Shown in pieces: positions 3,455-26,687 of a stretch of 64,000 nucleotides of DNA. This stretch comes from Dimorphilus gyrociliatus (lineage: Eukaryota; Animalia; Annelida), in the NCBI GenBank assembly GCA_904063045.1, contig CAJFCJ010000005.1, forward strand, positions 2,396,088-2,460,087, read 5' to 3'. Positions within the stretch are counted from its first letter, which is position 1, and each line of letters opens with the position of its first letter. The translations under genes were made by a program, and so were the position numbers. The notes below the pieces were generated by a model. That model searched no databases. It was not told where the DNA came from and saw only the letters and a list, made by a program, of their open reading frames with translations.

Positions 3455-4759
3455 TTAATAATTTCTATTTTCCAATCGGGGATAATGTTGAAAATATAAC
3501 TTTTTAGGATTTTCATTATCCGATAGACAGAATATTATTTCATCATCTGTTAATTGATATTCCAATAACCTTTTCCCGGGGAATATCTTTTCATTTTCAA
3601 TTGATATAGCTTCTTGAAATTTAATGTTAAATATAATAATTTTCTCATTATCAGGTAGGATTCTATGACCATCGTTCAACTTGTTAATTACGTTCTCGTA
3701 CATTGAATAGTTTTCTTTATTAGATTTTTCAATATTTATAATTATTGAATCGATTTGATGATCAGAAAAGTATTCTATATAGTTTTCGTACTCGACGCAT
3801 AAACCATCCATATAGGCTTTGTGGGCAATAACTGCTAATTGTTCATCTTTAGCGTTTCTACCATTCGATACTGTTTCTTTTAAAGATGGTTTCTTAAAAT
3901 AGTAAGTCTTTCCAACATCCGTTGTGAGTATGATGTTATGTTTAAATACTCCAAACATAACTTTAGATTTGAGAACTTTTCTTTGTAAAAGGCATTTTAT
4001 AATACCAACGAAATTATCTAAATTAATGATTTTACAATAGAATTTTGAATCATTATAAGTTATATAAGATAGATGATTATCGTAGGTTGATGCTATATCT
4101 AATATTGATCCTTTCTTCCATATCATACCTTTACCAGTTTTAAGATAATAGATTTGACGATTATCTTGTAATGTTATAAAGCCTTCCTTTGTAGAGATTA
4201 CTTTTATTGGTTCTGATTTTAGTTCCATTGTAGATTGTTTTATAGGTTTCTCGTATATAGGCCTAGTAAGCGTTCCAATAGTTTTAGCTTTAAAGCTACA
4301 ATCTTCTGTAAAAGTACCAGTTTTATTAAAAAGATTTTCGGTTGTATATATTAATTCTTTAGTCATTTTCTGTACATTTCGATAAAGGACTGGATTTGAA
4401 AGATTTCTCTTGAAATCCTTTAATTGAATTGTATCTGTAAGAGCTTGCTTTAAATTTGATTTCTTTTCGTCAAAAAATACATCAATCTCATCGGCTAACC
4501 TTCCCCTTTGCCTGTGAATTGAACTTATTAACTCTTTTACAAAGTCGTCAAGTACTTTCTTTTGTTTTATACAATCGTCATTAATCTTTACTATTTCCGT
4601 TTCAATAGTATCGTCAAAAGACATAAGTTTCTTTTGTAGTGTTTCGTCTTCACTTTCAAACTGTTTATCTTCAAGATTTATATGATTTTCCAACGAGATT
4701 TTCGTTTGTTTACTACGTTGATCATTTGTTAATTTTGTTGTGTTATTGACTGCCAACAT
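3455..4759 (-). CDS. RING-less TRIM-NHL-like protein (CC + propeller-like)
   Basis: Intact 434 aa ORF with coiled coil, ILDIASTYDNHLSYI, MFGVFKHNIIL and KIFPGKRLLEYQLT motifs shared with tandem paralogs. Confidence 0.85.
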   Translation of the reverse strand: MLAVNNTTKLTNDQRSKQTKISLENHINLEDKQFESEDETLQKKLMSFDDTIETEIVKINDDCIKQKKVLDDFVKELISSIHRQRGRLADEIDVFFDEKKSNLKQALTDTIQLKDFKRNLSNPVLYRNVQKMTKELIYTTENLFNKTGTFTEDCSFKAKTIGTLTRPIYEKPIKQSTMELKSEPIKVISTKEGFITLQDNRQIYYLKTGKGMIWKKGSILDIASTYDNHLSYITYNDSKFYCKIINLDNFVGIIKCLLQRKVLKSKVMFGVFKHNIILTTDVGKTYYFKKPSLKETVSNGRNAKDEQLAVIAHKAYMDGLCVEYENYIEYFSDHQIDSIIINIEKSNKENYSMYENVINKLNDGHRILPDNEKIIIFNIKFQEAISIENEKIFPGKRLLEYQLTDDEIIFCLSDNENPKKLYFQHYPRLENRNY

Positions 4760-5130
4760 ATTTACTTTCTTTATTCTAAATTGTTAACTTGATATAGCTG
4801 TTTTCTATTTGATAAAATGAACATTATTTAATAAGGAATTAAGTGTTTTATACGAATAAAACATACCTTCTTAGTAAAAGATGATACCGTTATTTCAAAT
4901 TTAAGACGGGAAAAAATTCCATTCTAATTTAATATGATGTCCATAAATATAACGATAAATTAATTAATTAATTAATTAATTAGTTACCCAATTAGCAAAA
5001 AACTTTTATTCTATATAAAAACAAATAGCTAACTAAGGCAAAACTAAGTATTTTTTATAAAAAAAAAAGAAACAGGGAAATAACAACTAATTTCTATTGG
5101 CTAAAGTAAATCATAAACGATAAATGAGGT

Positions 5131-6364
5131 CTATTTGTAAAGATGGGGAAAAGATTGAATATACAACTTTTTTGAATTAGCCCTATCCATTAAACAGAAT
5201 ATAATATTTTCGCTTGTCACCTTATAATCTATTAATGATTTGTTTTTGAACATGTAATCTTGTTGAATATAATAAGTCGACTCTTTAGAAAATAGAATAA
5301 GCTTATCGTCGTGACCGATAATCTTGTATCCTTCCAATATCTTATTCATTATATTACTGTACATCGAATGGCCATTTATCGAACAACTAACAGCTTTTCT
5401 TTTATAGCTCCTCTTAAAATCAGAATCATAGCAAATAACTGAAGAATTATAAATATAATAGAGTCCATTGTTGAAGACTTTATAAGTAAAGTTGCGGTTC
5501 ATCTTATGAAGTTTATTACTCCATGTTTCACAGCATAAAGTTTTTCTTTCAATAATAAATGTTTCCTTCGAATTGCAACTTCTAATGATGATATTATCTC
5601 TAAAAACTCCAAACATAACAGTTAAAGGATCAATCTTACATTTTGGAAGTCGTACTTCTTCTGTCTGTCTATATTCAAGATTGATTTCTTTGCAGTAAAA
5701 TCTACCTTCTCTGTACTGAATATACGCAAGATTATCTTCGTATGTTGAGTATATATCGAGAATTTCATCTTTTTCAGAGATAAGACACTTTTTTGTTTTT
5801 ACTTCAATAATCTCACAACCATTTTGCAGTGCTAGAAATCCTATCTTTGTAGCGATAACCCTTGTAATTGGTTTAGATAATTCGATTAATTCTTCTTTAA
5901 ATGGAACTTCAAAAATTGGTTTGATTATACCGCCAATGTTCTTGGTTTGGGCAAACTCTGACATAGAATAGATAGCGACCTTATTTAATAGATTCTTTGT
6001 TGAATATATAAAGTTTTTCTTCATTTTTTCCATATTTTGACAAATGATTGGATTTGTTGAATTTTCATGAAGATCTTGCAACCGTTTCACATCGGAAAGC
6101 GCTTGTTGTAAAGAAAATTTTTTTTCAGAGTAAAATAAATCCATTTCATCCAAGATATTCTCCTTTTGCTCTTTAATTGACACAATTAATTCATTAACCG
6201 TTTCGTCAAGTATTCTTTCTTGTTTTATTCTTTCTTGTTCATCGCCAATTCTATTAGTCATTTCTTTAATAAGATCACCAAATGAACCTGCATTATCTAT
6301 GATTTATAATTTCTTCAGATTCTTGTAAAATGTTTTCAGGAATTTCCATCTTGACTTCTGTCAT
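5131..6364 (-). CDS. RING-less TRIM-NHL-like protein with an apparent +1 frameshift near the N-terminus
   Basis: 376 aa ORF 5131-6261 with the family motifs. Upstream ATG at 6364 (MTEVKMEIPENILQESEEIIN) is out of frame by one base near 6300. Confidence 0.75.
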
Positions 6365-6787: not shown

Positions 6788-8086
6788 TTAAAAATTCTCA
6801 TCTTTCAATACAGGATAATACTGAATTGTTATCATTTTTGGATTTTCTATATCCAAAAGACAAAATACAATATGAGAATTTGTTAATTGATATTCAAGTA
6901 ATCTTTTGCCAGGGAAGATTTTCTCGTGTTCAATTAAGTATCCTTCGCCAGATTTAACGTTAAATAGTACAAAATCTTTTTCACTGCAGAAGATTTGTTC
7001 ACCTTCAATTAGCTTATCAATTATATTATCGTATAGGGAGAAATCTTGAATAGTAGAAGTTTTAATATTCAAGAATATTTTATCAGCATTAAAGTCGCTA
7101 AAATATTCCAATTCATCTCCAAAATCAATACATAAACCTTTCTTAAATGCTTTATGACTAATTGGTTTCTTTTTTGAAGTTTTATCCTCAATTTCTGATA
7201 CTTCGAGATTAGTTCTATGATAGAAATGAGTTTTACCATTATCCGAACTAATTATAATATTTTTCTTATAAACTCCAAACATAATTGAAGATAAATTATT
7301 AAACGGATATGAGAAACTTCTCATAATCCATTCATCATTTTCCAAGTTTAACGTTTTACAATAGAATTTTGAATCAACATAAACAATGTATGATAATCGA
7401 TTATCAAATGTTGAACAAATATCTAATATATCATTCTTCTCCGAAACTACAGTATGGCCATAATTCAATTCAATAATTTTATTATTCGATTGCCATGCGA
7501 GAAATCCTTTTTTAGTTGCAATAACCTTCTTTAATTGTGAATTTAATAATATTATATGTTCTTTAATAGGTTTTTCGTAAATGGGCGTCTTTAATTTTCC
7601 AATATTATTTTCGTATTTATAATTTTCTTTTAATTCAAAATATTTCATTTTATTTATAATATTTTCAGTTGCGTACATTAATTCTTTGGCCATCTTTTTT
7701 AAATTTCTTTGAACTATTGGATTTTGTGAATTTCTATTAAAATCTTCAAGGCGTTGTGTGTCTGATAAAGCTCGTTTTAAATTTGATTTCTTATCAGCGT
7801 AGAATAATTCAATTTCATCTTTAATTGTTTCTTGTTGTTTATGGAGTGAAGCTATATATTTAGTAACTGCTTTATCAATTATATTCTTTTGCTTTTCGCA
7901 TTCATTGTCAGTGTTGTTGATCTCTTTTTCGATAATCTTATTAAATGATATTAGCCTATCTTGTAAAGACTCGTTTTCTATATTGAACACTTTCATTTCT
8001 TTACTATTTTGATTATTTATCTTTATTGTTTCCGGTGATAAATTGAAATATTCATCAGAAGGTATATTTTCTGCGGTACCGCTCAT
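6788..8086 (-). CDS. RING-less TRIM-NHL-like protein
   Basis: Intact 432 aa ORF and closest paralog of 3455-4759 (shared KIFPGKRLLEYQLT, ADKKSNLK.AL.DT). Confidence 0.85.
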   Translation of the reverse strand: MSGTAENIPSDEYFNLSPETIKINNQNSKEMKVFNIENESLQDRLISFNKIIEKEINNTDNECEKQKNIIDKAVTKYIASLHKQQETIKDEIELFYADKKSNLKRALSDTQRLEDFNRNSQNPIVQRNLKKMAKELMYATENIINKMKYFELKENYKYENNIGKLKTPIYEKPIKEHIILLNSQLKKVIATKKGFLAWQSNNKIIELNYGHTVVSEKNDILDICSTFDNRLSYIVYVDSKFYCKTLNLENDEWIMRSFSYPFNNLSSIMFGVYKKNIIISSDNGKTHFYHRTNLEVSEIEDKTSKKKPISHKAFKKGLCIDFGDELEYFSDFNADKIFLNIKTSTIQDFSLYDNIIDKLIEGEQIFCSEKDFVLFNVKSGEGYLIEHEKIFPGKRLLEYQLTNSHIVFCLLDIENPKMITIQYYPVLKDENF

Positions 8087-8685: not shown

Positions 8686-9935
8686 CTATGCTAAATTCAA
8701 ATAACGATCAATAGTTATATTTTTCGATTTATCCTTGTCAGTTAAACAAAACATTACCATCTCTCCTTCAATTCGATACTCTAACAAAATTTTACCATTG
8801 AAATAAGCGTCATTATCTAAAGAGAATCCAACTTTTTTGCCAAAATGAACAAGAAAATGTTGATTTCGTATCGAAAAAATTTCATATCCTTCGTTTAATT
8901 TCGATATTATCTCGTTAGATACCGATGGATATTCCTTTACAATAGGAACAATTCTAATAAGGTAGGTAAACTTCGCTTCGGAGCTATAATACTCAATAAA
9001 TGATCCAAGTATCCTGCATAAACCGTGAGGAAAGGTTTTATAATTATCCTTTGAATATTGAAATAGATCATTACGATCATCTTTCAAATAGCTCATTGGT
9101 CTATAGTTGGATTTTTTGAAGAGACATTCGTCAAATGAATTCTCATTCTTTAATAAGATAGAATCTTTGAAAACGCAAAATATCGCCATAGAAGGACAAC
9201 TATCACGTTCCACTAAAGGAATTCCTTTTCTTTGTCTTATTCTTTCATTTATATAATCTCCTTCCAGAACTACTTCTTTATAATAAAATACACCTTTTAT
9301 ATATTGGATATATGCCAAATCTCTATTGTACGTTGGGCAAATATCAAGAATTTCGTTATCATCTTCCACTAAAAGTGCTTCGGAAAATAACGCGTATACC
9401 CTCGATCTACCTAAAAGCACCAGAAATCCTACCTTTGTATCAATAATCTTTCTTGGTTTTACCACGAGTTGAAACGATAATTCAGAAATTGGTCTTTCAA
9501 AAGTATGCTCAACAATCTTTACCTTATCTAATTCACTTAAAAATGAATATTTATCATAAATCTCAGCTTTATGCATTTCATTTATACACGATTCAAGATA
9601 ATCTTTAATATTCAATCTAAATGAGTCACGACTATAGGTATCCTCCATATTTTTCGTCGTCTCTAGTAGATCTTTGATAACATTTTTCGTTTGTTTCAAT
9701 TCAGATTTGTTCTTTTCATAAATTACATCTATTTCGGAAACAAAACGATTTCTCTTACGATAAAGTGCTACAACGTGCTTTTTAATCGATCTGTCGAGTG
9801 ATTCAATTCGTTTTTCACGATTAATTTTCAATCTCTTAAATTGTTGTTGAATCATTTTTTCAAAAGACTTAAGAAGAGAAATTGTTGATTATGAGAAATT
9901 TATTAAAATTAACATATTCTTACCTTTAAATCCAT
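8686..9935 (-). CDS. RING-less TRIM-NHL-like protein, 2 exons
   Basis: 389 aa ORF plus a probable 12-nt first exon (MDLK, 9935-9924) and a 56-nt intron 9923-9868 (AAG|GTAAGA...CTTAAG|TCT). This gives SFEKMIQQQ, like the paralog SF..II..EI motif. Confidence 0.75.
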
Positions 9936-10012
9936 TGATAATTGTTTGTCGATAACAAGATTATATGAAGTTCGACTTTGATAGGGATTAAATTACTCAG
10001 TGTTTAACAGTG

Positions 10013-10040
10013 TCTCTCTCTCTCTCTCTCTTTCTCACTC
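10013..10040. repeat. (CT)n microsatellite
   Basis: Direct CT run. Confidence 0.85.
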
Positions 10041-10231
10041 TCTGACTATCTCTGCCTCCAACTCTTACGTACTCTCTACTATCTAATTGAATTTAGTTAG
10101 GTTGTCAATTAAAAATAGATTTATAAGACCTAATTCGTAAATTAGAGATGTTTTTGTCCTAAATTCCTGCAACTATTAAATGAAAAACAGGTTGTTGTAT
10201 ATATTAATATATAAGTATATATATATATATA

Positions 10232-10423
10232 TGTAGTCGACGAGTACTGTATTGTTTCAAAGCGTCTAGTTTTAAAGTCTATACTGGTAAATAGCAGTAA
10301 TTATGAGTAATACACGTACACAAAGAAATGATAACGGGTAAAAGTCAGTTGGTTTTAAAATTATATAAGCGTAACGATAATTTGGCTCGCTGACAAATTT
10401 AGGCGATGTACTCATCGACTACA
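10232..10423 (-). repeat. 3' LTR of the BEL/Pao element
   Basis: 10261-10423 aligns with 12041-12204 with about 12 mismatches and 1 indel by eye. Ends are TGTAGTCGACGAGTAC and GTACTCATCGACTACA. Confidence 0.85.
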
Positions 10424-11943
10424 CTGGCCGGGGGAAGAGGAAAAGAGAGAGGCTCTTTTGGTAGGTAGGGGATTATATCTCTAACGTCTCTCTCTATATT
10501 ACTGTGACCAGTGTAGATCTCGAAGGTGCGGTCTGTGATTTGTTGATTTACCAGACGCTGGAATTTGTACTGTTGTCTCATATACGGTCATTCTTTTTTA
10601 CTTTTCCTTTAATTGATTATAGTTGATGGCAGATGTCGTTTTCGGGATCATTGCCTCTTTATGATATAACGTCGTGTGATGAGCTTGGCTGCATTTTTTG
10701 CAATTGAATTTTGACGGACATTTTTCACTGGTATGCCCGCCTCGTAGGCAGTTCTGGCATCTGTGGAACCTTTGAACCATCCTCTGTCTTCCTTTCAGAT
10801 CAAAATTGATGTAAATCGGGCAATAGGCCAAACATACGTGATTTTCATAACACAGACATCTGTATTCTTTGCTCGAAGCTTGAGTCTTCGCCTTATTTTT
10901 CAGTTCGACGTGTGCCAAGGGTCTATCATCCGGGAAGGGGGGCTCTGCCTCGCGAATGTGCTATTGGGTTTGGCCATGTTGGAAGCCACGAGGCTTGTTT
11001 CGTCATCTTGACATACATACGTTCCCTTTTCAATCCCTTCAATGACCTTCGATACATAGTGACCTATCTTTTCTACAAGTGAACCAAAATCGTCCAGATA
11101 TTCATTAGTTAAGATTATAATTTGTAATCGAGCGTCAAAGGGCAGTCTCATTGAGAACTGTTTAAGCTTTTCAAATTGAGGGCGTCCTTCATATTTTGGC
11201 AAATCCAACAATGCAAGAAATATCCTAAATTCAACCCAATCGGCGACATTTTGAGGTTGGAATGGAGCGGTTTTGTCCAAAATTTGTTGTACTATTTTAC
11301 CTTGGTATAGATTGATGTCGCCGTAAACATAATCTTAAGCTTTGACGAAATTTAAGAAGTTTTCTTTACTGTCTCTACTATATGCCATATTGTGATACTC
11401 GTTGCACATTGTCTCCTCTGATGACCATTTATTTAAAATCTGACATTTTTCTAAATCATCTATATTGGCTTCCAACAGTGGGACAATGATGTCGTCGCGG
11501 AAAATCAGAAAGTTGGTACCGTTAAACTTTTCAGTTGGAGTAGGTTCATTGTTTCTTAGTTTCTCGATTCTATGATTGAGTTGTATCAAATGGTTTTCGA
11601 CTTCCTGGTTACGCTTCGAAGTATTTCGAATTTTTGAACTTCAACCATCTTGTTCTTCGACCGTTGGGAAATGTTCCGCTTCTGGATCATCACCAGAATT
11701 CAACGGATTTTCTTTGAAAGAGTTGAGCTTAATGGATTTGAGCAGTTGAAAGAGTTGTTCCAACTTTGTTTCCATCGCAACTCTAATTTGAGCTTTCGAT
11801 TCTTCGAATATTCTTCTCTGTTCCTCCAATTTCTCATCGAGTGTTGCTAAGTCGACCATGTTGGTCTGTTGGATGGTGGTTTCCAGTTGATTTGGAGAGT
11901 TGGCGGATTTAGCGACCATTTTATTTTGTCTTTTCCTAGTCAT
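10424..11943 (-). pseudogene. Broken gag plus integrase-tail remnant
   Basis: Consecutive ORF fragments 11641-11943, 11335-11589, 10900-11280, 10598-10918 and 10399-10581 are separated by stops or frameshifts. Confidence 0.8.
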
Positions 11944-12009
11944 TTCAGTATTGTTATACCTTTACATACTTATAATTACTATAGTCGTTGAGCGGGTTGA
12001 GGACATAAG

Positions 12010-12204
12010 TTGTCGCAACGTTATTGACTTATCAGTACAGCGCGTTTAGTTTTAAAGTCTATACTGGTAATATAGCAGTAAGTATAAGTAATACACATAC
12101 ACAAAGAAATGATAAGGTGTAGAAGTCAGTTGGTTTTACAATTATATAAGCGTAACGATATTTTGGCTCGCTGCCAAATTTAGGCGATGTACTCGTCGAC
12201 TACA
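12010..12204 (-). repeat. 5' LTR of the BEL/Pao element (inner boundary uncertain)
   Basis: Direct repeat of the left LTR. Homology is lost in the last 30-45 nt of the U5 side. A possible degenerate PBS TATGTCCTCAACCCG lies near 11993-12007. Confidence 0.7.
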
Positions 12205-13010
12205 TATGTATATGGGCGAATAGATTGGTATCGTCCTCTAACCGTTGATTTGTTATTTTGTAATTTCACTGGATCGCATTTAAAGGGTAGAGGGAAAGTC
12301 TAATAATCAATAGAAGGTTGAGTGTAACTTACGAGTATGTCACATGTTACATTAGTATAGGACCGCGATGGTCTGTGCATTAACCACTAAGCAGATCGAG
12401 ATTGGTTGATGGTAATGCCTTCTCAGTATAGTTCCGGTTGATATAGATAGCTGGTTGATCTTTTATCTCTGGTAAGAAATCAACTACATAGGCCAATATA
12501 TCATAGTGATGGTCTTGGTGAGGAAAGATGATTTCCACTCTTTACGATATATAATTGGTTGAAACACGTTATTTGGGTACGATAAGTTGGTTTGACACTG
12601 TTTATTAGGATCTGGTTTGTAGGAGGAATTGCCGGCTTTATAAGCGATATTGATGCTCCAATATGGATCAATGCAACGATCTTATGAGTTGAGGATGTGC
12701 CTGTGGCCAGGACTTGTACTTTGGTCTCACAGATGGGCATTCTGTAATTATAATGATCGGAGTGATTGATATTAACAGGAAAGGTTGTTTTAGGAGACGT
12801 TGGGTTCTTGTGATGGAAAGATGTAAAGTTGATTGCATTTATGGCCACGGGACTAAGAAGGACAGTTGTCATTAGTATGACCACTTCGTAAGAAATTGAT
12901 GCATCTGTGAAGAAGCTGAACGAATCTTCTGTATTTGTATTTGTTGGTAAATTGGAGTGTTTAATTCTGCTTTCATTTCGTGGTTCTGGGTAGTCATTCA
13001 TTCTTCCATA
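12205..13010 (-). mobile_element. Degenerate retroelement aspartic-protease remnant
   Basis: KIVALIHIGASISLIK at 12651-12671 is two single-base changes from the retropepsin motif LIDTGAS. The downstream frame ILAYVVDFLP...NLDLLSG* resembles Pao protease-region sequence. Confidence 0.5.
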
Positions 13011-13270
13011 TATGTATATATATATATACAGTGTACACACTATATATTTGTAACTTTTCAACTCTCTTACTGTGGAATATAATTGTTTTTTTATCTAACA
13101 ACAAAAGATATGAGACGAATTAAGATTTATATCTTTAAAACTATTTACTTAAAATAGACACATAAAGCTGTTCAAAAAAACATAAAAATATATACAGTAT
13201 AATACCGTTTGTTATGTTCAAATTGAACATTCCTAAAAGATTATCAATTATCATTGTAAAGAGAAAAGCA

Positions 13271-14500
13271 TTATATTATTGGATAATATTGAATTGTAAC
13301 TTTTATCGTATCACCACGATTTGATAAACAGAATATTAATTCTTCATTTGTTATTTTATATTCTCTAAGTGTTTTTCCATTGAATATTTTATCTTCTTCT
13401 ATTGCATCTGCCAATTTCGACTCGGAATTTATCAAATAAATGAATCCATCGTCGGTGAAAATCTTTATACCTTTGTTAATCTTTTGTATTATATCTTCGT
13501 AGAGAGAAAATTTACTCTTCTTTACGTATTTTATATCAAAATCGTAATGAAGCTGTTCGTTGAAATCAAAATATCTTGCTTTAAAAGCTGATGCCATGCA
13601 CCAACCGTCCATAAAGACTTTGTGAGAGTGCATTGTTCCTTGAGTTTCAATAGATGTTAGCATAGATGACGATATCTCAAAACGGTATATTACAGATGAA
13701 CTATGACTGCTAATAAAAACATAGCCTTTAAAAACTGCAAACATTACTGTTGATGGTATCAGTTCTAATATGGGTAAGCATATTTCATTTGATTCGTTAT
13801 TTTCCAAATTGTGAATATAGCAGTAGAATCTATCGTTTAAATGTTTAAGATAAGCTAAATTACCATCAGAAGTTGTAGATATATCTAGAATATCTCTATT
13901 CTCTGAAACCAACGAAATTTGTGTCTCTAAATTGATAATTTCATTACAGCGATTAAGTGCAATAAAACCTTTATTAGTAAGGATAACCTTACTAGGTTGC
14001 TCTTTCAATCTTATTGAATGTTCTTTAATAGGTTTCTCGTAAGCGGTTTCAATGATATCTCCAATATTTTTATCAATAGTTAGTAGAGATTTTTCAAAAA
14101 TTGTATACTTTTTAAAGAATAATTTCGTCGAATAGAGGAATTCTTTAGTTAAATTTAATAAATTCCTTTGAATTATAGCGTTTGTTGAACTTATTTGTAA
14201 TTCGTGCAAAAGTTTTGTATCAGATATTGCTTGTTGTAGAGTTGCTTTCTTCTCGGCATAGAATTCATTAATCTCATTTGTAATAGACATTTTCTGTTTA
14301 AGAATAAAAGTAATTAGGTTCATTATGAATTGATCCATTTTTTTCTTATCAATTTCTCGATTTTTATCAATTTCATTTAATTCATGTTCAACTGTTGAAC
14401 GCAGTGATTGCAATGAAACAACCAAAGAATCTTCTTTCTCATCTGAAGATGGTAAGCTGTTGCATTCATTTTCTAAATTTTCTGTCATATGTTTATCCAT
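13271..14500 (-). CDS. RING-less TRIM-NHL-like protein
   Basis: Intact 409 aa ORF with ILDISTTSDGNLAYL (NHL-like blade) and the family C-terminal signature. Confidence 0.85.
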   Translation of the reverse strand: MDKHMTENLENECNSLPSSDEKEDSLVVSLQSLRSTVEHELNEIDKNREIDKKKMDQFIMNLITFILKQKMSITNEINEFYAEKKATLQQAISDTKLLHELQISSTNAIIQRNLLNLTKEFLYSTKLFFKKYTIFEKSLLTIDKNIGDIIETAYEKPIKEHSIRLKEQPSKVILTNKGFIALNRCNEIINLETQISLVSENRDILDISTTSDGNLAYLKHLNDRFYCYIHNLENNESNEICLPILELIPSTVMFAVFKGYVFISSHSSSVIYRFEISSSMLTSIETQGTMHSHKVFMDGWCMASAFKARYFDFNEQLHYDFDIKYVKKSKFSLYEDIIQKINKGIKIFTDDGFIYLINSESKLADAIEEDKIFNGKTLREYKITNEELIFCLSNRGDTIKVTIQYYPII

Positions 14501-14718
14501 TATAGATAGCCTATTATAATAAAAATATATATCACATGGAATGTCCCTCTTATATCCCGAATATCGCTACGAAATAACAACACAAAAGATTGGTTTTTTA
14601 TTTTTTTAATTAGGGCACAAATTGTATTCCACAATAATTAAGTTCAGTGTCCAATAAATATTATTTACATTAGGTTCTTAGCCTTTAAAAATGACTTCAT
14701 GATTAAAATATATTAATT

Positions 14719-15981
14719 TTATATATGGGAATTAGGATAGTAGTGAATGCAAATATGTTTGGGATCGTTTAAATGGATTAAACACAATTTTACCTCAATA
14801 TCTGTTATATTACATTCTTTCAAAGTGAATCCCTTAATTAACTTATCTTGTTCAATTAAGGTTGCTGTCCATGTTTGTTCATCAATTATGAAAATGTTAT
14901 GATTAGTGCAAAATATTTCCCTACCTTCGTTGAGTTTATGTATAATGGAATCGTATAACGAATAGTTATGCGATTCGTTTTCTCTTATATTGAATTGATG
15001 GTAAAAGCCATCAATAGAGTTAAAGATAGCAATTTGAGACGAACCTCCAACGCATAAACCATTGGTAAACGACTTGTTATCGAATATCTCTGATTTATTT
15101 TCTAAATCAATCATTCTCGATGAAGTTATATCGTAAAAGTAAACTTTCTCTCCTTTCTGACTTCCTATTATAATGCTATGTTTAAAAACTGCGAACATGA
15201 CTGTTGAAGAGTCAATATTGCATTTTGGTAAAATCGTATCACTAGATTCATGAATGTCAAGATTCACTATTGTGCATATAAATCTATCTTTATCGAAATG
15301 AAGATACGCTAAATTGTTATCATAAGTTCTACAAATATCCAATATCTTCTTTGCTGTTGAAATTAAACGTTTTCCACTTTCCAATTCAATAATTCTATAA
15401 TCAGTTTCCAAAACTATAAATCCTTTCCTTGATGTGATAATCTTTTTTGGTGAATTATCAAATTTAATTGACAACTCCTTAATTGGAATCTCGTAAAGTG
15501 GTTTAATCAACTTTCCAATTTCTCCACTTAAACATTGATCTTTTCGATCGAAATGAATAGTTTTTTCCAATAGATTATTAGTAGAATAGATAAAATCTTT
15601 CGTAAGCTTTTGTAAAGATTTTGGATTAATGAAATTTGTTGAATTTTGTTGTAATTTCTCCAAACGATTAATATCTTCTAATGCTTTAGCAAGATTAACT
15701 TTCTTATCTGTATAAAAGTTATCAATTTGCTCCATAATAGATTCTCGTTTCTTTTTAATACTAGTAATTAATTCAGTGATTGAATTATTGACAATTTTCT
15801 GTTGTTCTTCTCTTTGATAATCAACTTTATCAATTTCCTGTTCAATTGTTGCGTCAAAACTTTGTACTTCCGCTTTCAAAATATTAATTTCATTTTTAAG
15901 GAGAAGTTTTTGATTTTTAGGTGAAATATTAGAGTAAGAATCTTGATTTTCTTCCAACGTATTTTCATTCAATTTATTCAT
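14719..15981 (-). CDS. RING-less TRIM-NHL-like protein
   Basis: Intact 420 aa ORF with ILDICRTYDNNLAYL, MFAVFKHSIII and SLYDSIIHKLNEG. Confidence 0.85.
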   Translation of the reverse strand: MNKLNENTLEENQDSYSNISPKNQKLLLKNEINILKAEVQSFDATIEQEIDKVDYQREEQQKIVNNSITELITSIKKKRESIMEQIDNFYTDKKVNLAKALEDINRLEKLQQNSTNFINPKSLQKLTKDFIYSTNNLLEKTIHFDRKDQCLSGEIGKLIKPLYEIPIKELSIKFDNSPKKIITSRKGFIVLETDYRIIELESGKRLISTAKKILDICRTYDNNLAYLHFDKDRFICTIVNLDIHESSDTILPKCNIDSSTVMFAVFKHSIIIGSQKGEKVYFYDITSSRMIDLENKSEIFDNKSFTNGLCVGGSSQIAIFNSIDGFYHQFNIRENESHNYSLYDSIIHKLNEGREIFCTNHNIFIIDEQTWTATLIEQDKLIKGFTLKECNITDIEVKLCLIHLNDPKHICIHYYPNSHI

Positions 15982-16354: not shown

Positions 16355-17638
16355 TCACATTGTTAGATTTGGATAGAATTCTAAAGTGATCATTTTCGAA
16401 TCGTTCCTATCCGATAAACAAAATACAATCTCATTTTCCGTTATTCGATAATCTAATAAATTTTTCCCTTTAAATATTCTATCTTGTTCAATCGAATTTG
16501 CAGTTTCATTTCTTTGATTAATAATTACTAATTCATTACTTTTCGATAGTAATTTTTGATTTTCAATCAACTTATTTATAATATCTCCGTAGAGTGAAAG
16601 ATCATCTTTCGGATATGATTTTATATTGATGATTAAACGTTGCGTTCTATCAACATTGAAATATTCAACCTTAGTTTCATTGGCAGTGAATATACCGTCG
16701 AAGAATGTTTTATGATAGTAATTATCCTTTTCTATATCTATTTCATTCTTAAAGTTGGTCTCGTTCAGATACGGTTTTTCAAAATAGTAAGCAGTTTTAC
16801 TACGTAAGCTCCTTAACATAATACAATCTTTGAATACTCCGTATACAATAGATTGTGCATCAATTTCTCGTTTATTAATAAAGTATTCGCATTGTCCGTA
16901 ATTATCATACTCTAATAGCTTTACGTAGAAAATACCATCGTTTATTGCAAGATACGATAGGCGACCCTCGTATGTTGCACACATATCCAATATCTTCCTA
17001 TCCTCATTTACAACGATAGCTTTATTCTGTAGATCGTATATTATAAAATCATTTTGTAATATAAAAAATGAATCTTTAGTAGAGATTATCTTTCTGGGTT
17101 TTGCTCTAAGCTCTGCAAAATACCTTCTAACAGGTTTCTCATAAATAGGTCTTACTAAATGTCCTATATCTTTCTCAACAAAAAGGTTAGAACCTTCGAA
17201 GACTGTCTCCCTTCGGAGGAGGTTCTCGGTTGAGTATAAAAATTCGCTAATCATTTTAGTGAGATTACGTTGAATAATTTCGTTGGATGAAGTTTCGTAT
17301 AATGAATTTAATTGTTTAGCTTCTGAAAGAGCTTTTTCAAGTTGTGCCTTTTTATCTGTATAGAATAGATCTATTCTACTATCGATATCTATCTTTTTAC
17401 TATGAATTGAGTCGATTAAACTGTTAACGTCTGTGATAAATTCGTTACGCTTCTTCTCTTTTTCCGTATCTACTTTCTCAATCTCTTCTCTTATTCTGTT
17501 CAGTAATAACTGCAATTTATTTTCGGGTATATCGTGCTCATCCGATGATGATATATATGCCTCTGATGTATAATTTTCAGCTGACATAATCGACCCACTA
17601 TCGTCGCTATCTACGGGTATTGTATCCAAAGTGTCCAT
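16355..17638 (-). CDS. RING-less TRIM-NHL-like protein
   Basis: Intact 427 aa ORF with an acidic N-terminus, coiled coil and RIFKGKNLLDYRITENEIVFCL. Confidence 0.85.
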   Translation of the reverse strand: MDTLDTIPVDSDDSGSIMSAENYTSEAYISSSDEHDIPENKLQLLLNRIREEIEKVDTEKEKKRNEFITDVNSLIDSIHSKKIDIDSRIDLFYTDKKAQLEKALSEAKQLNSLYETSSNEIIQRNLTKMISEFLYSTENLLRRETVFEGSNLFVEKDIGHLVRPIYEKPVRRYFAELRAKPRKIISTKDSFFILQNDFIIYDLQNKAIVVNEDRKILDMCATYEGRLSYLAINDGIFYVKLLEYDNYGQCEYFINKREIDAQSIVYGVFKDCIMLRSLRSKTAYYFEKPYLNETNFKNEIDIEKDNYYHKTFFDGIFTANETKVEYFNVDRTQRLIINIKSYPKDDLSLYGDIINKLIENQKLLSKSNELVIINQRNETANSIEQDRIFKGKNLLDYRITENEIVFCLSDRNDSKMITLEFYPNLTM

Positions 17639-18124: not shown

Positions 18125-18572
18125 TTAAAACTGAAGCATTTGACCCTTTGACTTCTTTTCTCCTCCAAGTTCGAAATGTTTGCATCTTTTAATTGCCAAT
18201 TGTTTCTTTCTATGACAAACTGTACACTCCATTTTCAAGACAATCTTTTTAGTCGTTTTTGCCTTTTTAAAAGTATGTTTGAATAGAATTAGAAAGAGGG
18301 GAAGAGAGCGAAAGAAGAAAGTACTATTACCTTTTTATGGAAGATTGGTCTAGTTTGTCCTCCATAACCTTCTTGTTTTATGTGATATCTTCTATCACCT
18401 TATTTTTTCAAAAGAGAAGCATTTTAAAATTCTAATAACAGCAATAAAATACTATACCTAAAGCTAAACCATTAGCTTTTCCCTTCTTATACTGAGTCAC
18501 TTTATGCAGAGTATGCTTTCGGCATTTACGACCTTTGCAAAAGGTGTTTCTTGATTTTGGAATATTCACCAT
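18125..18572 (-). CDS. RPL36A: 60S ribosomal protein L36a (eL42/L44), 3 coding exons
   Basis: Exons 18572-18458, 18398-18331 and 18262-18125 splice to 106 aa: [32 protein letters not shown]...[29 protein letters not shown]...[21 protein letters not shown]. Confidence 0.97.
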
Positions 18573-18975
18573 GGCTTCAAAGAACAGAGTGAAAGAATTA
18601 GTTAATTCTATAACATATAATACTAACTTGTACATAACTTATGGACTTGTTGTGCAATATCTGCTTGGATGAGTCATACAAAATGAAAAGTATCCATTAA
18701 ACAATGACTGAGAGTGTTATCTTTGTTTTTCACTATATTTAGAAAAATAGTTTTTGACGATGATTTTAAATAATTATCATATATGAATATGTAAAAATGT
18801 GATATTATGACGTCTTAATAGACTAATTCTTCTACGAGCATTGGTGGTGTAGCGGTAGCATTGGTGCCTTCCAAGCACTAGACCCGGGTTCAACTCCCGG
18901 CCAATGCATTGTGAATTTTTTTGTCTTTTTTCTAAATCAATAAAAGATTGCAGTAGCTTTTATTTGGTTGTCTTT
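18545..18975. repeat. Duplicated block copy A: RPL36A start, 5'UTR intron, promoter and tRNA-Gly
   Basis: Colinear homology with 22490-22915 (TTCACCATGGCTTCAA, CTTATGGACTTGT, TGAGTCATACAAA, tRNA, AAGATTGCAGTAGC). Confidence 0.9.
18838..18908 (+). tRNA. tRNA-Gly(TCC) copy 1
   Basis: Cloverleaf GCATTGG..GGTGC-CTTCCAA-GCACT..CCGGG-TTCAACT-CCCGG-CCAATGC-A followed by an oligo-T terminator. Confidence 0.95.
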
Positions 18976-19013
18976 AATACAAGATTTAATAATTAAAAAT
19001 ATTATAGTAAAAT

Positions 19014-20228
19014 CTAAACAGCAAAAGATTTAAGACGAATTAAACATTCATCTTTGCAGTCGACAAGGCAAAATGTTACTTCATTACCATTCGTCGAACA
19101 ATCAAATAATTTACCATCGGTGAATACTTTATCCATTTCAATAAGAATTCCTTCGTATTTTGTATTATCCAAAAGAATTAGATTATTATTATAAACAATT
19201 GAATAAAATCCATCTTTTATCCTATTCAATATACTTGTAAAGATAGAATCATTTATCTTATCATCTCCACTGAATATTTCTATATTATAAAGTTGCCTTT
19301 TTTCCGTTAAAGTATCAAAAGAATAAAAAGAATCGCCAACTTTTAAAAATATCTTATCATCTTTAAATTTCAATAGAAGAATTGAATCGTTAAAAGAAAT
19401 TCTTTTTACTTGATCATCTCCATTCTTGAAATTAATATACATTGAATTTTTATCAAAGATATAGATAAAATTTCCATCTATTGCGTAATTTATGAATGTA
19501 TCTATTCCAATGTTGATGTTACTAGAATACTTTAATTTAAAATCGTCGTCTAATACTGTTACAATAAATTGTTTTTCATTATTAATCGTTATGAAAGATA
19601 GTTGTTGATGAGAGGATATCGCTATATCGTAGATAGTGTTGTTTGCCTTTAATAAAGATCTATTAGTTTGTATTTCAATTATTTCATGATCATTTCGAAT
19701 TGTGAAATATCCTAAAGAATTTGAAACAATTCTCTGTGATTTCTCTCTTAATTCAAATGATCGTTCTTTCATTAATCGTTTTTCATTTCCAATTATTAAT
19801 AGTTCGCCTATTGATAGATTATCAAGATAACTAGGTCTTTCAATATTTACTTTCACTTTCATTAGTTCATTACAAGAGTTGTTTAAATTCTTTAAAAGTT
19901 TATCTAGGTCGTTTTGTAATAATTCATTTGTCGTTATACGTCTAATTTCAATTAATCTTTGAATATCATCTAATAACTGTTCCATTTTTAAACTTTTCCG
20001 TTTGTAAAACTCTCTTAATTCATCTTGAAGTATAAATTTCTTTCTATGTATTAATGTTAATAGCATTAAACTTTCACGATTAATTTGATTTAGTTCTGTA
20101 TTCGTCTCTTCGTCAATATTATCTATTTCTAGAAGAATCTTATTCGAAAGTGATTCAAATGTATCATCGATATCATCTTGGTTACTTTCGTCATCGTTAT
20201 CTTCTTTATTCATTGAATTTTGATTCAT
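19014..20228 (-). CDS. RING-less TRIM-NHL-like protein (divergent)
   Basis: Intact 404 aa ORF with IYDIAISSHQQLSFI and KVFTDGKLFDCSTNGNEVTFCL. Confidence 0.8.
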   Translation of the reverse strand: MNQNSMNKEDNDDESNQDDIDDTFESLSNKILLEIDNIDEETNTELNQINRESLMLLTLIHRKKFILQDELREFYKRKSLKMEQLLDDIQRLIEIRRITTNELLQNDLDKLLKNLNNSCNELMKVKVNIERPSYLDNLSIGELLIIGNEKRLMKERSFELREKSQRIVSNSLGYFTIRNDHEIIEIQTNRSLLKANNTIYDIAISSHQQLSFITINNEKQFIVTVLDDDFKLKYSSNINIGIDTFINYAIDGNFIYIFDKNSMYINFKNGDDQVKRISFNDSILLLKFKDDKIFLKVGDSFYSFDTLTEKRQLYNIEIFSGDDKINDSIFTSILNRIKDGFYSIVYNNNLILLDNTKYEGILIEMDKVFTDGKLFDCSTNGNEVTFCLVDCKDECLIRLKSFAV

Positions 20229-20870
20229 TTAATGGAAAATAATTCCTTTTTTCTTGTCTATATTGCTATCGATATAAAATTGTATTTGGCCTATTTTTGT
20301 CTTAAGTTCAATTATGATTATCTATATTTATAATATTGGATTATCGAATAGCATATAATATCTTCTACGTTATCAAGTATATACAATATACATGAAAATA
20401 TTACTTAAACTAAGTTTTAATGTTATAAATCAATGGATGACGCAGTCTTCGGTTCACCAAAGCTCTTACTGCTACTATCAATTCTGCTCGAGAGATCACT
20501 GCAGATAAAGTATTTACCCTTCTGTTTAGGATCCTCATAGAGGAATCCAGAATCAGATTCATCCGAAGTATCAACGCGGATGCTCATGAACATGGACTTA
20601 GTGTTCGCTAATATGAAGTAATTACCCTACTGTCGGAAGTCAACATTGAATATTTTGAGAAATGTCATATTTCAAAACCGCCGGACTGTCGCAAACTCTA
20701 CGACGCGAATAATGATAAGGACGAAAATAGCAGATCTAAGATATCTATGCCCAGATAATCATCTATGTTTGGCATTATTGTATAAATTAATAATAGTAGA
20801 TAATAAACATAAAGGTTTAGTCGTATTTTTTAGGGAAATCTACAATATATTAGTACACTGTATATATTGT

Positions 20871-22438
20871 CTATTCAGGTTGTTGTTTGTCAATAGAGAA
20901 TTGAACGTATTCATTTTCCCACCAACTTTTCTTGAATTTTCTCAATAATAGGCATGTAACATAGAATATGCTACAGAAAAAGTAAGATCCGCATCCAAGG
21001 TAGAATAGCGAATGAAAAGAATGAGTTAAATCGAAGAGGGCACCTGTAAAGAAACAAAAGGAAGAGACAGGTTAATGTGGAACGTATGTTTTAGGGGAAA
21101 AAGACAAAACCTGCAAGAGTTGGTCCGATAAAGGAACCAATGCCCATAGATATTCTGAAAATCGAGAATGTTTCCGACAGATGTCTTCCATCGTGAAGTT
21201 CTATTGATGCTGATATTTGGGCTGCCATTATTGGACCATCAAATAGACCAAGAGCTATTAAATTACAACCATTAGTTTGTTTATATCGTGCTAGTTGTAT
21301 AGCTTACCAATAATGTAAATGAGAACAGTCGGAAAATTATATGTGAATATAGCAAAGCAGTTTGTCAATGACAACAGTAAACTGGCGACTGTGTACGAAA
21401 AGATTAAATGTCCTTTAAGGTTATCTCCAAAGAGGGAAAAAATTAAACGACTAAGTCCCTCGCAAATACCCATAACAGACATTCCAATACTAGCTTTTTC
21501 CGGTGAAACTCCCAAGCTTGTCATGTAGTGAACCTATTCAAGTTATTAACAATACTATTCATAAAGCGACAAAAAACTATGCTTTATAACAAACCAGAAA
21601 CATAATGGAACCTGAGTATCCAACACTGCGAAGGCATGTTGCAAAAAACCAACACATTCCGACAATTATTCTTGTCTTTTTTTTTAATTGCCCTTCTTCA
21701 GCCGGTCGAATAAGAGGAATTGTTTCGTCTCTCTCACCCGCCTTATCTTCCAACTGGTCAGGATCCACAACCCCCAGAGAGAACGGAAAGCAAAGAAGGA
21801 ATAGAATTAAACCGTGTATACCGAATGTCTTCTGCCACCCGAAATTACGAATAAGAATTTCTAATACTGGATTTAGAATAAAAGTACCCAAAGGATATCC
21901 GCAAGTTAATAAACTATTAATAAGTACGTGTCTTGGATGGCTAAATGGATAAAAGCGATTAACTGTAAAATATAATGGATTGATCATTAAACAGCTAGCC
22001 GGACCAAACAGAATTCCGAAAAATACCAAAACAGACCAAAAATTCGCATAAACCCCAGTTAAAGCAAGAACTAATGGTCCAAAAAAGGATCCTAACATTA
22101 GGCATTTTCTAGTTCCTACTTTGTCAGCAACAAAATTGGCAAATGGAGCGCATATATAAACCAGAGCTAGGGCACCAGACGCAATTAACCCTACAAATTG
22201 AATAGTTTTTGAATGATTAGAATTATATTAACTATAGATTTTGAACAAATAAATAAAAAGAATCACCTAAATAGGCTTCTTGGTTAGAAATGCTTCCTTT
22301 TAAAGGTGCAATATATTCACCAAAAGTAAAGAATGATCCGCAACTTGCCGAATAAATAACAATACAAAAGAAACAGACAAAAGGTCCACGGAAACTCCTA
22401 GTGTTCCATTTTTTCATAAAGCTATTAAAGAAACCCAT
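20871..22438 (-). CDS. Monocarboxylate transporter (SLC16/MCT, MFS), 5 exons, 436 aa
   Basis: Exons 22438-22267, 22190-21595, 21533-21308, 21254-21111 and 21043-20871 total 1311 nt in frame with GT-AG introns. MFS motifs APFANFVADKVGTRKC, GYPLGTFILNP, NFGWQKTF and GSFIGPTLAGALFDLTHSF. Confidence 0.9.
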
Positions 22439-22489
22439 CTCCGTCGTTTGTAAGTTACTTTTTAAGAGTTTGAAAGTTTCTTCAAAAAG

Positions 22490-23158: not shown

Positions 23159-24352
23159 TTAAAAGTTACATTCAATTGGAAAGTGTTTAAATTTAATTGT
23201 AAACTCATCTGTTTGATTAATTAGGCAAAATATAATTTCTGTTTTTGTTATTCTATAATCCAAAAGCTTCTCAGCCGGAAATAGCTTATCTTTATCAAGA
23301 GAGATACCATTCTGATTGTTGGCTCCAACGAAGACAATATTTTTTGAATTGCAGAATAATATTTTACCTTTTTTAAGATTTTCAATAACATCGTAATAGA
23401 TTGAATAGCTCTCCTTTTCGGATTTACTAACATTTTGAGTTGCAAATTCATCATCTTTAAAAACGAATAGTGAACTTCCGGAAAATTGATATAAAATGTT
23501 TCCTTGCAATCTATTAGAAAGATTTGATATTTCTCTATCATATTTCCAAGCGTTAACAATATTACTAGTTTCTTTAGAAAATACCAACAGTTTATTCATA
23601 TCGTTTATTATTATATCGTCTTTTAGAACTGCAAAACCGGCTTCATTCGGATTGACGGCATTTCTTGGTAAAACATACTTAGTTTTCCCATAATTATCTT
23701 TTGATAACAATTGAATAACATAATGATTTTCAGTAAATTGCAGATACGAGAGTCCATTATCATACGTTGTTGATATATCATAAATCTTATTCTCCGTCCA
23801 AATGATAATTTCCTGAGTTTCAAGATTCACAATCTTATTCTTATTTTGTATATTATAGAAGCCGTGTCTATTTGAAATAACTTTACCAGGTTTTTCATTC
23901 AATTCAATTGAATGATTTTCAATTGGTTTCTCAAAGAAAGGTGTATTTAACTTTCCAATTTCAAAATGATCTAATATTTCCGATCTATCAAAGATTTTCT
24001 TCTTCCTCATTAAATTCTCCGAAGAGTACTTTAGTTTCTTGATAATAAGAGATAATTCTGATTGTAGGAATGGTATATTAGATTTTTTTTTAGCTTCGTA
24101 CAAACGTTTGATGTCGGAGAGAGCATGACAAAGATTTCTCTTCTTTTCTTCATTAAACGATAAAATCTCATTTTTAAGACTAATTTGTTTTGCTTTTACC
24201 TCATTTATTAATGTTATAATTTCATTATTTACTTTATTAATTTCAATTTCAGCCTCTTTATCAATATCATTAATATTTTGTCGGATTTCTTCAGTTAATT
24301 CCAGAAATTCTTGTTCCAATACACCATTTTCTTCGTTTAGATTACCTGCCAT
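23159..24352 (-). CDS. RING-less TRIM-NHL-like protein
   Basis: Intact 397 aa ORF with IYDISTTYDNGLSYL and KLFPAEKLLDYRITKTEIIFCL. Confidence 0.85.
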   Translation of the reverse strand: MAGNLNEENGVLEQEFLELTEEIRQNINDIDKEAEIEINKVNNEIITLINEVKAKQISLKNEILSFNEEKKRNLCHALSDIKRLYEAKKKSNIPFLQSELSLIIKKLKYSSENLMRKKKIFDRSEILDHFEIGKLNTPFFEKPIENHSIELNEKPGKVISNRHGFYNIQNKNKIVNLETQEIIIWTENKIYDISTTYDNGLSYLQFTENHYVIQLLSKDNYGKTKYVLPRNAVNPNEAGFAVLKDDIIINDMNKLLVFSKETSNIVNAWKYDREISNLSNRLQGNILYQFSGSSLFVFKDDEFATQNVSKSEKESYSIYYDVIENLKKGKILFCNSKNIVFVGANNQNGISLDKDKLFPAEKLLDYRITKTEIIFCLINQTDEFTIKFKHFPIECNF

Positions 24353-24617
24353 TGTACATTTGTTAAATCTCTGTTATTCTATGAAAAAGAAAAATCAAAT
24401 AAATAAATTATTGAAGGTCAAAGTCAATGTTTTTTCGAATCTTATCAGATTATATTTTCTTATTTGTGACCTAGCTGGAAGACGTCTGGAAATGATAATA
24501 CTTTTATTAACTATATATATACAGTATATATAATTCTTTCAAACATTTTTATAGAATAATCACGGAGTTGTAAAGTTATTTTAAAGTTTCGTAGTTCATT
24601 GAAAAAAATAACTTGGA

Positions 24618-24632
24618 AGCGCCATCTGGTGT
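24618..24632 (-). promoter_or_regulatory. CTCF-like motif
   Basis: Minus strand ACACCAGATGGCGCT matches the CCASYAGRKGGCRS-type consensus. It is a GC-rich 15-mer in AT-rich intergenic DNA. Confidence 0.6.
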
Positions 24633-24741
24633 GTGAGGAGTTGGATTTTTCATTAACATTTATTTTTTGAGGGGATTTCATAACAATGTCATCAGAAAAT
24701 GTATTCTTTATATTGCGAGAGGAATTAAAGAATAAATATGA

Positions 24742-24814
24742 AGCAGAATAGCACAGGAGGTAGTGCGCTAGGCTCATAACCTAGAGGTCCAAGGTTCGAT
24801 TCCTTGTTCTGCTT
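24742..24814 (+). tRNA. tRNA-Met(CAT) with mixed initiator/elongator features
   Basis: All 21 stem pairs are Watson-Crick: AGCAGAA/TTCTGCT, GCAC/GTGC, CTAGG/CCTAG, CAAGG/CCTTG. Anticodon loop CTCATAA, T-loop TTCGATT, downstream T5. Confidence 0.85.
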
Positions 24815-25472
24815 TAATGTTTTTACTTATCATTACTACCTATTTATTAAACATCAATTATCGGCTTAGATTCTTTCAATTTTGTCTTGAAAAACAGCTT
24901 TTTTCCTTTTAAATTCCTTAATTTGTAATTAAACTTATTCAATTCAACAGTTTTCTAATCTTCCATCTTTGTACCACTTTCTTCTCATAAATGAATCACA
25001 ATCGAAATTTATACGATGATTTCTCTTCAATTAATGAAAGATTTGTTGTTCATGATTGAAAAATACTATCAAGTCATTAACTGTTGAGCATCTTCAATAA
25101 AGAACTAATTACTAATTGTTTCTGTCTATACAAGTTGAGCTGTGTTTATTATTTTGTGTTAGGGTATTCTAACGAATTACACTATAAGCCTATTAGATAA
25201 TATTATATTAAAGAGACAAAAGTATCTGTCTAATAATTTACTTAAACTGATAGAAAAGGGTAAATTATTAAGGTAAAAGCAGTAAAAGCTCACTTGGGAA
25301 AAAGGTGAAGGACAACAATAAAAAAGAGGAAGAAGAGAGTTACCTTCTCTTGTTATTTTACCATATATTACGTTTGTTTGCTTTCATAAAGCGCACAGAA
25401 TATATGTATCGCTTCACTACTCAACGTAGCTTCAGACGATTAATCGAAATAGAAGATATTTTATTGGGAACT

Positions 25473-26687
25473 ATGGACGAAACAACGGCTGATATGCAAG
25501 AATTTGAAATTCAAAAATCATATATTGATAATACCAAAGAAATGGCTGAAGAAATTATTAACAAACTTAAGAAAATCGACGAAGAAAAGGAGAATGAAAC
25601 GAGTAAGCTAAATTATGAAATTACTAAATTAGTAGTTTCTATCCGTAATCAACAATCTTCAGTTCAAGATCAACTTAATAACTTCTATGAAAAGAAGAGA
25701 ACGATGCTATACGAAATTTATGAGAATATAAGAAAACTTGATAAATTAGCTGAAGGAGATTCGGAGGAAAATAATACCAATAATTTTTTAACGATAATGA
25801 GTAGAGTCAATACATTAACTGATAGTTTTAAGAGAAAAGAAGAAGCGTATTTAAAGACTGCCGAATTTTTTGATGGTTCTACCATTGGAAGATTATTTTT
25901 TACTACTCCAGATGTTCCGGTTCATGAATATTCTATTGTGGTTGAAGAAAAGCCAATAAAGGTTATATCAAACTCTGAAAGTTTCTTTACTATACAAGGT
26001 AAAAATCGTATTATTAATCTAAGGAATCAAGTAGTACTGGGTCAAGTTGCTGATACGATTGATGATATAGCAATAACTTCGGATGGTAGATTATCCTTTA
26101 TTATAGTTTATAATTGGGAAGAGAGCGCCGTTAATATCCTACCTAAAGGAACTCATAAACCAGAAGCGTATAAACTAGAAAATGCATTTCTTAGATCAGG
26201 AAATTGTAAATTTACAATTCTGAATGATAAAATAGTCGTTGGAGATGGAAATTTGACATCCATTTTCTCGACAGAGAGTAGAAAAAGAGAAAAAGTTTGG
26301 AGGTTATGGTCGTCCAGTCAACATTATAAAATTAAGGATAATACATTATATCAGCTATCCGATAATACTTGGGTATCTTATACAGATAATCAATTAGGAG
26401 AATTTCGCCAAGTTCACGATTATTCGGACACAACTACTCCGATACTTAAAGTTCTTATAAGAAAATTAGTAGCGGGAAATATACTGTTTTGCCTAAATGA
26501 CTATATAACATTAATTGATCCAGACAAGAAGAATGCTATCTCTATAAAAATGCAATTAATATTTCCCGATAAAACGTTATTGGACTATCAAATAAAGAAC
26601 GACGAAGTAATTCTCTGTCTTCATTGTAATATTGATCCATGTAAAATTTCCTTTATGCATTTTCCCTACAAATTCATCTTGAATTAA
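25473..26687 (+). CDS. RING-less TRIM-NHL-like protein (inverted relative to the array)
   Basis: Probable start MDETTADMQEF at 25473. Contains DDIAITSDGRLSFI (clearest NHL-like blade) and LIFPDKTLLDYQIKNDEVILCL. Confidence 0.85.
   Translation: MDETTADMQEFEIQKSYIDNTKEMAEEIINKLKKIDEEKENETSKLNYEITKLVVSIRNQQSSVQDQLNNFYEKKRTMLYEIYENIRKLDKLAEGDSEENNTNNFLTIMSRVNTLTDSFKRKEEAYLKTAEFFDGSTIGRLFFTTPDVPVHEYSIVVEEKPIKVISNSESFFTIQGKNRIINLRNQVVLGQVADTIDDIAITSDGRLSFIIVYNWEESAVNILPKGTHKPEAYKLENAFLRSGNCKFTILNDKIVVGDGNLTSIFSTESRKREKVWRLWSSSQHYKIKDNTLYQLSDNTWVSYTDNQLGEFRQVHDYSDTTTPILKVLIRKLVAGNILFCLNDYITLIDPDKKNAISIKMQLIFPDKTLLDYQIKNDEVILCLHCNIDPCKISFMHFPYKFILN

Follow-up and report, generated by a model that had tools for sequence, protein, structure and literature searches.

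A tandem array of RING-less coiled-coil and propeller genes in Dimorphilus gyrociliatus, probably functional members of a RING-bearing family

What becomes of the relatives of a RING protein when the RING itself is missing? The question is raised by a locus of the annelid Dimorphilus gyrociliatus, where ten neighbouring genes encode a coiled coil followed by a propeller and begin with a short leader in place of a RING. We analysed this array in a window of 64,000 nucleotides (nt), C5:2396088-2460087 of the 77.9-Mb assembly, which is AT-rich animal DNA (27-29% GC). According to the list of open reading frames (ORFs) and their translations, nine of the ten ORFs lie on the minus strand and one is inverted on the plus strand, each encoding 376-434 amino acids (aa; Table 1). 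We think it rather probable that all ten genes have a function, though not a catalytic one, and belong to a family of RING, coiled coil and propeller proteins, confined so far to D. gyrociliatus and its relatives, in which they descend from a single old loss of the RING.

The ten ORFs are single-exon paralogues that align end to end, with 21-44% identity to copy 1, and all of them are intact. The original prediction, made from the sequence before this analysis, had described such an array of nine co-oriented genes and one inverted copy, mostly intact and strongly diverged, and every ORF was found where it had been placed. At the base composition of the window, we estimate a stop frequency of about 0.08 per random codon and a chance probability of about 1e-14 for an open frame of 376 codons. 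At such a frequency (about 8% of random codons), chance cannot account for ten open frames of about 400 codons. The ORFs match a protein of NCBI/UniRef letter for letter in nine of the ten cases (all but copy 8), so the public annotation also models these nine as RING-less single-exon genes. Copy 8 falls in an 18-gene RING-less clade of the tree. For copy 10, the ORF tool proposed a GTG start at 25305 (460 aa), which we rejected as an artefact; the public model begins at the ATG at 25404. Successive minus-strand copies are separated by 371, 526, 599, 3415, 218, 373, 1375 and 2930 nt, and three of these gaps (3415, 1375 and 2930 nt) are occupied by other sequence. The gap of 218 nt (14501-14718) has the size given in advance. 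Copies 9 and 10 are arranged head to head. The leaders had been expected to be short and often acidic: acidic residues are indeed enriched in most copies, but copies 2 and 4 are almost leaderless and the N-terminus of copy 4 is basic.

The RING is truly absent from the array, as had been claimed. A tblastn search with five RING N-termini gave no match at E<1 within 3455-26687 and recovered only the RING-bearing genes outside it. We also built a RING profile from 37 sequences of the family; run unfiltered and at full sensitivity on all six-frame fragments, it gave no credible match in the array and scored six RING genes at E values of 2e-15 or lower. Within 3455-26687, cysteine-rich stretches are confined to a foreign insertion and an exon of a transporter, and the first 100 residues of the array proteins contain zero or one cysteine. 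The RING could instead be encoded on a distant upstream exon that is spliced, or otherwise joined, to each ORF. This is most improbable: neither 3455-26687 nor 25 kb of arrays from a second species (described below) contains any RING-like coding sequence, in the RING-bearing paralogues a single exon encodes the RING together with coiled coil and propeller, the public models coincide with the ORFs for the nine copies, an in-frame stop lies 1-45 codons upstream of every array ATG, and the paper on the D. gyrociliatus genome reports neither trans-splicing nor operons (PMC7854359). The same paper mentions neither TRIM proteins, RING nor ubiquitin.

The B-box is missing too, again in agreement with what had been predicted. 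The Pfam model zf-B_box matches neither the ten array proteins nor the RING-bearing paralogues, and the 27 genome-wide matches of PF00643 include none in C5:2.36-2.61 Mb. In Pfam, the ten proteins gave nothing above the cut-off, and no TRIM or NHL model reached its threshold; the model TRIM_CC matches copy 6 alone, below threshold (E=0.02, 15 bits against a cut-off of 30). The ten copies thus lack both RING and B-box, and since two of the three motifs that define TRIM proteins fail, "TRIM-like" denotes here an architecture and not membership of that family. Of the proposed kinship with TRIM proteins, what stands is the presence of RING, coiled coil and propeller paralogues nearby; the name itself is a loose label for a family without any B-box-bearing member.

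To describe the fold, we modelled copy 3 with AlphaFold2 on an alignment of 33 family sequences, with a mean predicted local distance difference test (pLDDT) of 86.3 and a predicted template modelling score (pTM) of 0.79. In this model, residues 1-36 are disordered, two helices span 41-119 (79 residues) and 123-145 (23 residues), and a beta domain of 26 strands extends over 149-425, with pLDDT mostly above 90. The strands would form six four-stranded blades, a division read from the strand list and not from the coordinates. The structure search points the same way, with 220-240 residues aligning to six-bladed beta-propellers at a root mean square deviation of 3.7-4.2. Model and search together bear out the propeller of the original prediction. 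Its origin is harder to trace. NHL repeats (PF01436) were not matched by Pfam in the ten proteins, a family profile run against the sequences of the PDB returned no NHL structure and only weak coiled-coil noise, and hhalign gave a probability of 1% against the six-repeat NHL domain of the worm's own canonical filamin-NHL gene. ESM-Atlas provided a sub-threshold lead to mollusc NHL clusters. Descent from canonical TRIM-NHL proteins is thus unsupported by sequence, as the hhalign probability indicates, and the structure leaves room for it.

Coiled coil and propeller are homologous to those of the RING-bearing members. A profile of the RING-less proteins matches the RING-bearing ORFs at E values of 1e-8 to 1e-31, a profile of the propeller recovers RING-bearing proteins (e.g., P0030, P0058 and P0060), and both types fall in one tree. 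The D. gyrociliatus genome holds at least 41 family matches, mostly in C5:2.36-2.61 Mb. Among 1.84 billion cluster representatives, the propeller-only profile found 68 proteins at E values of 0.001 or lower, mostly from this worm and its relatives. Ten of the 68 were looked up, and all came from D. gyrociliatus or from Logan assemblies except one bacterial protein; the weakest of the 68 are bacterial propellers. A word-index search for homologues returned three relatives, all from Logan assemblies. A 36-aa protein that clusters with copy 1 (P0006) led to two further Logan contigs (L024 and L025), which we dropped, as they are GC-rich, look mammalian (possibly human) and bear no similarity to the window.

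The maximum-likelihood tree comprises 46 members, with the RING columns removed, and is unrooted for lack of an outgroup. One branch (support 97/93) has on one side 23 RING-less genes, namely the ten of the window, seven just upstream and six of the second species; the clade therefore reaches past the window, by at least 7 genes upstream. The ten window genes lie within a clade with 100/98 support. The neighbour of this RING-less clade is a RING-bearing gene, C5:2604957 (96/88). A further four RING-less genes, 61146-62474 among them, fall inside the RING-bearing part of the tree. One old RING loss and a few later ones would be the parsimonious reading of this tree. The opposite polarity, in which the ancestor consisted of coiled coil and propeller, another lineage gained the RING and nothing was lost here, is favoured by the arbitrary root and by a propeller-profile search that found no relatives outside D. 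gyrociliatus and related worms. We hold it to be improbable: the grouping of C5:2604957 with the RING-less clade and the four nested RING-less genes make an ancestral RING more parsimonious, and the plan of RING, coiled coil and six-bladed propeller matches that of TRIM-NHL proteins in the structure search and in the ESM lead.

In Logan runs of the SRR233722xx series, which represent a second species, we found 14 co-oriented tandem RING-less genes on two contigs, separated by 144-812 nt, and the RING profile had no match in these arrays (25 kb). Four pairs of reciprocal best matches link the window to the second species, with 41-51% identity and collinear order (Table 1). The exon of an MFS transporter is 67% identical between the two, its orthology being uncertain, as the same genome has a paralogue with 61% identity; at such an identity, the two species are well separated. 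The ratio of nonsynonymous to synonymous substitution rates (dN/dS, Nei-Gojobori) was 0.21-0.25 for the four pairs, values that are indicative, since dS is saturated. Judging by these sequences, the rate at which the family evolves is only moderately above that of an ordinary membrane protein. Rapid evolution in an arms race finds no support in these identities or in dN/dS. Could the copies be decaying duplicates without function? Their high divergence (21-44% identity) would fit, as would the shortened N-termini of copies 2 and 4 and the fragments of the family elsewhere in the cluster. Yet the ten frames have stayed open where about 8% of random codons are stops (by our estimate), dN/dS is well below 1, one-to-one collinear orthologues persist in a species as distant as the transporter exon indicates, and a confident fold is supported by the family alignment. 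Decay is thus very unlikely, and the expansion has probably taken place under purifying selection after one old RING loss.

How might proteins of this kind act? The full-length plan of the family is RING, coiled coil and six-bladed beta-propeller, without B-box. In the RING-less lineage, the place of the RING is taken by a leader of about 40 residues that is disordered, mostly acidic and little conserved. A single loss most likely preceded the split of the two sampled species. Tandem duplication would then have brought the lineage to at least 17 genes in D. gyrociliatus, and every protein has retained the long helical hairpin and the propeller. Dimerisation through the TRIM coiled coil is established for TRIM5, TRIM25 and TRIM69. 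By analogy, the helices of the array proteins may pair into a dimer that presents two propellers, i.e., a putative bivalent binder of protein, RNA or another ligand. Without a RING, these proteins would not themselves recruit an E2 and may act by binding: as scaffolds, by sequestering, or by competing with ligase-competent paralogues for targets. Several points weigh against a functional family derived by RING loss. Exact-protein look-ups of transcript contigs for copies 1, 3 and 6 came back empty; sequence searches tie the propeller to no characterised family, which leaves no basis for proposing a ligand; the choice of loss over gain depends on parsimony and on the RING-bearing neighbour, given the unrooted tree; and the saturation of dS limits what dN/dS can say.

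The original prediction had also suggested that the RING-less proteins heterodimerise with RING-bearing relatives. The coiled coil would mediate the contact, the partner being a RING-bearing paralogue or a stub like 52649-53314, either so that a few catalytic subunits serve many recognition propellers or so that the RING-less partners poison ligases as dominant negatives. The RING-bearing paralogues and the ORF made only of RING and coiled coil are in the same gene cluster, the main helices have similar and compatible lengths (79 and 73 residues), RING-less TRIM16 heterodimerises with other TRIMs (PMC3357404), and pairs of inactive and active TRIMs have been reported (PMC11992055). The coiled coils themselves argue otherwise. 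Between the RING-less proteins and four RING-bearing genes of the window, their identity of only 14% (8-21%) does not exceed that found when the RING-bearing genes are compared with one another, and within the RING-less group it is 29%. In reported TRIM hetero-pairs, overall identity is 35-75% (PMC11992055). These sequence comparisons somewhat weaken the idea, and we regard such pairing as unlikely. A little more doubtful still is its fullest form, a split, mix-and-match ubiquitin ligase in which about twenty RING-less proteins would be the recognition panel and pair with fewer RING-bearing paralogues or with stubs such as 52649-53314. If true, it would be a combinatorial recognition panel, with a logic like the modularity of F-box proteins and cullins but built on TRIM-like dimers.

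Several RING-bearing relatives surround the array (Table 1). The model of 37760-39097 (pLDDT 83.8) has the RING at residues 8-60, helices at 74-146 (73 residues) and 152-166, and the propeller at 186-444; only about 14 residues separate RING and helix, so that this predicted structure would have no room for a B-box. The gene at 1603-3060 is a single reading frame interrupted only by its cluster of stops, which resembles a short in-frame intron more than the mark of a broken gene. Pieces with a single domain of the family, like 52649-53314 and 29525-29923, are present elsewhere in the cluster. The window holds an eleventh RING-less member, 61146-62474, whose place in the tree is with RING-bearing genes (99/98) instead of the ten, and which looks like a separate RING loss. 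The ORF near the start of the window (183-1175) may be another member.

The array is broken up by unrelated genes, as the exons of an RPL36A/L44-like gene and of an MFS transporter sit between copies. The insertion between copies 4 and 5 is 3.4 kb of foreign sequence with a GC content of 33-38%, against 27% around it; it carries several short Cys/His-rich ORFs on the minus strand, one with a stretch resembling a gag knuckle, and had no match in a Pfam search. It is probably a degraded retroelement. Family members with a RING flank a NACHT ORF and a long leucine-rich-repeat (LRR) ORF, and the genes of the 250-kb family cluster lie next to NACHT-LRR and IFITM-like genes.

Table 1. Array copies, their orthologues, family relatives and other features of the window. 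Coordinates refer to the window, except for those on second-species contigs (L001, L021).
Feature	Position	Strand	Length (aa)	Remarks
Copy 1	3455..4759	-	434	Intact ORF; exact public protein model
Copy 2	5131..6261	-	376	Almost without leader, begins inside coiled coil; public model
Copy 3	6788..8086	-	432	Modelled by AlphaFold2; public model
Copy 4	8686..9855	-	389	Short basic N-terminus; most diverged of inner group; public model
Copy 5	13271..14500	-	409	Intact ORF; public model
Copy 6	14719..15981	-	420	Public model; weak TRIM_CC match unique to this copy
Copy 7	16355..17638	-	427	Strongly acidic leader; public model
Copy 8	19014..20228	-	404	Diverged; sole copy without exact public protein model
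Copy 9	23159..24352	-	397	Public model
Copy 10	25404..26687	+	427	Inverted; length from ATG 25404; public model of 427 aa
Copy 1 orthologue	L001:5363-6679			Reciprocal best match, 47% identity; pair joined in tree at 100/100
Copy 3 orthologue	L001:101-1372			Reciprocal best match, 51% identity
Copy 5 orthologue	L021:8543-9787			Reciprocal best match, 41% identity
Copy 6 orthologue	L021:7006-8265			Reciprocal best match, 42% identity
RING-bearing relative	1603-3060	+		Convergent with copy 1; five stops within ~50 nt around 2380-2430
RING-bearing relative	37760-39097			RING, coiled coil and propeller in one exon
RING-bearing relative	47645-48988			RING, coiled coil and C-terminal domain in one exon
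RING-bearing relative	49004-50392			RING, coiled coil and C-terminal domain in one exon
RING-bearing relative	51121-52482			RING, coiled coil and C-terminal domain in one exon
RING and coiled-coil stub	52649-53314	-	221	Without propeller
Degenerate-RING fragment	29525-29923	+	132	Without propeller; RING profile E=0.08
RING-less member	61146-62474	-	442	Outside the array
Possible family member	183-1175	+	330	C-terminal part matches family propeller (807-1133, E 1.7e-11)
Foreign insertion	9856-13270			Between copies 4 and 5
RPL36A/L44-like first exon	18432-18635	-		Between copies 7 and 8 (1375-nt gap)
MFS transporter exons	20410-22438	-		Monocarboxylate type; between copies 8 and 9 (2930-nt gap)
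PAN/trefoil-like secreted protein	27815-28882
Rhodopsin-type G protein-coupled receptor	30480-31520
NACHT ORF, then LRR ORF	39573-47289	+		LRR ORF of 1859 aa

The closest known systems include the TRIM-NHL proteins (class VII TRIMs: Brat, Mei-P26, TRIM2/3/32/71 and NHL-2). RING-less TRIMs of vertebrates (TRIM16, TRIM29 and TRIML2) resemble the array proteins: they belong to a RING ligase family yet are without its RING, and they retain the coiled coil and a C-terminal domain; TRIM14 and TRIM44 are further examples. They differ in keeping B-boxes, in ending mostly in PRY-SPRY or other domains and in being single genes, whereas the clade of the array has neither RING nor B-box, its proteins end in a propeller, and it numbers at least 17 genes, or 23 when the second species is included. 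The coiled coil of TRIM16 mediates both homo- and heterodimerisation (PMC3357404), and RING-less TRIMs exert regulatory functions (PMC11992055). The TRIM pseudoligases paired with active paralogues (TRIM51/TRIM49 and TRIM17/TRIM41) share with the pairing discussed above the idea that a non-catalytic member modulates an active one (PMC11992055); these pseudoligases keep the RING fold and form pairs that are 35-75% identical, whereas in the array the RING is gone and the coiled coils are 14% identical to those of the RING-bearing genes. As a bivalent binder, LIS1 offers a functional analogy, in which an N-terminal dimerising helical part precedes a propeller and there is no enzymatic domain, but its propeller is of the seven-bladed WD40 type, it carries a LisH motif, and there is no sequence relation; its chains are among the Foldseek matches, which are generic (template modelling scores of 0.3-0.37 by query). 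RING-less TRIMs and TRIM pseudoligases are thus already known; the array differs from them in that the B-box is also absent, that the six-bladed propeller is unclassified and that a large, old clade expanded in tandem takes the place of a single gene.

The role of ligase relatives that lack ligase activity is an open topic, for which the vertebrate cases are scattered single genes. In the 78-Mb genome of D. gyrociliatus, it is a whole old clade, of at least 17 genes, that has stayed intact and in the same order across two species, as its synteny with the second species indicates. This conservation of genes without RING and B-box suggests that selection can act on a function of the coiled coil and propeller module itself. 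Compact, free of introns and unannotated, the family would allow a clean test of whether such proteins act alone or as partners of the RING-bearing paralogues, and it adds an undescribed expanded gene family to the D. gyrociliatus genome.

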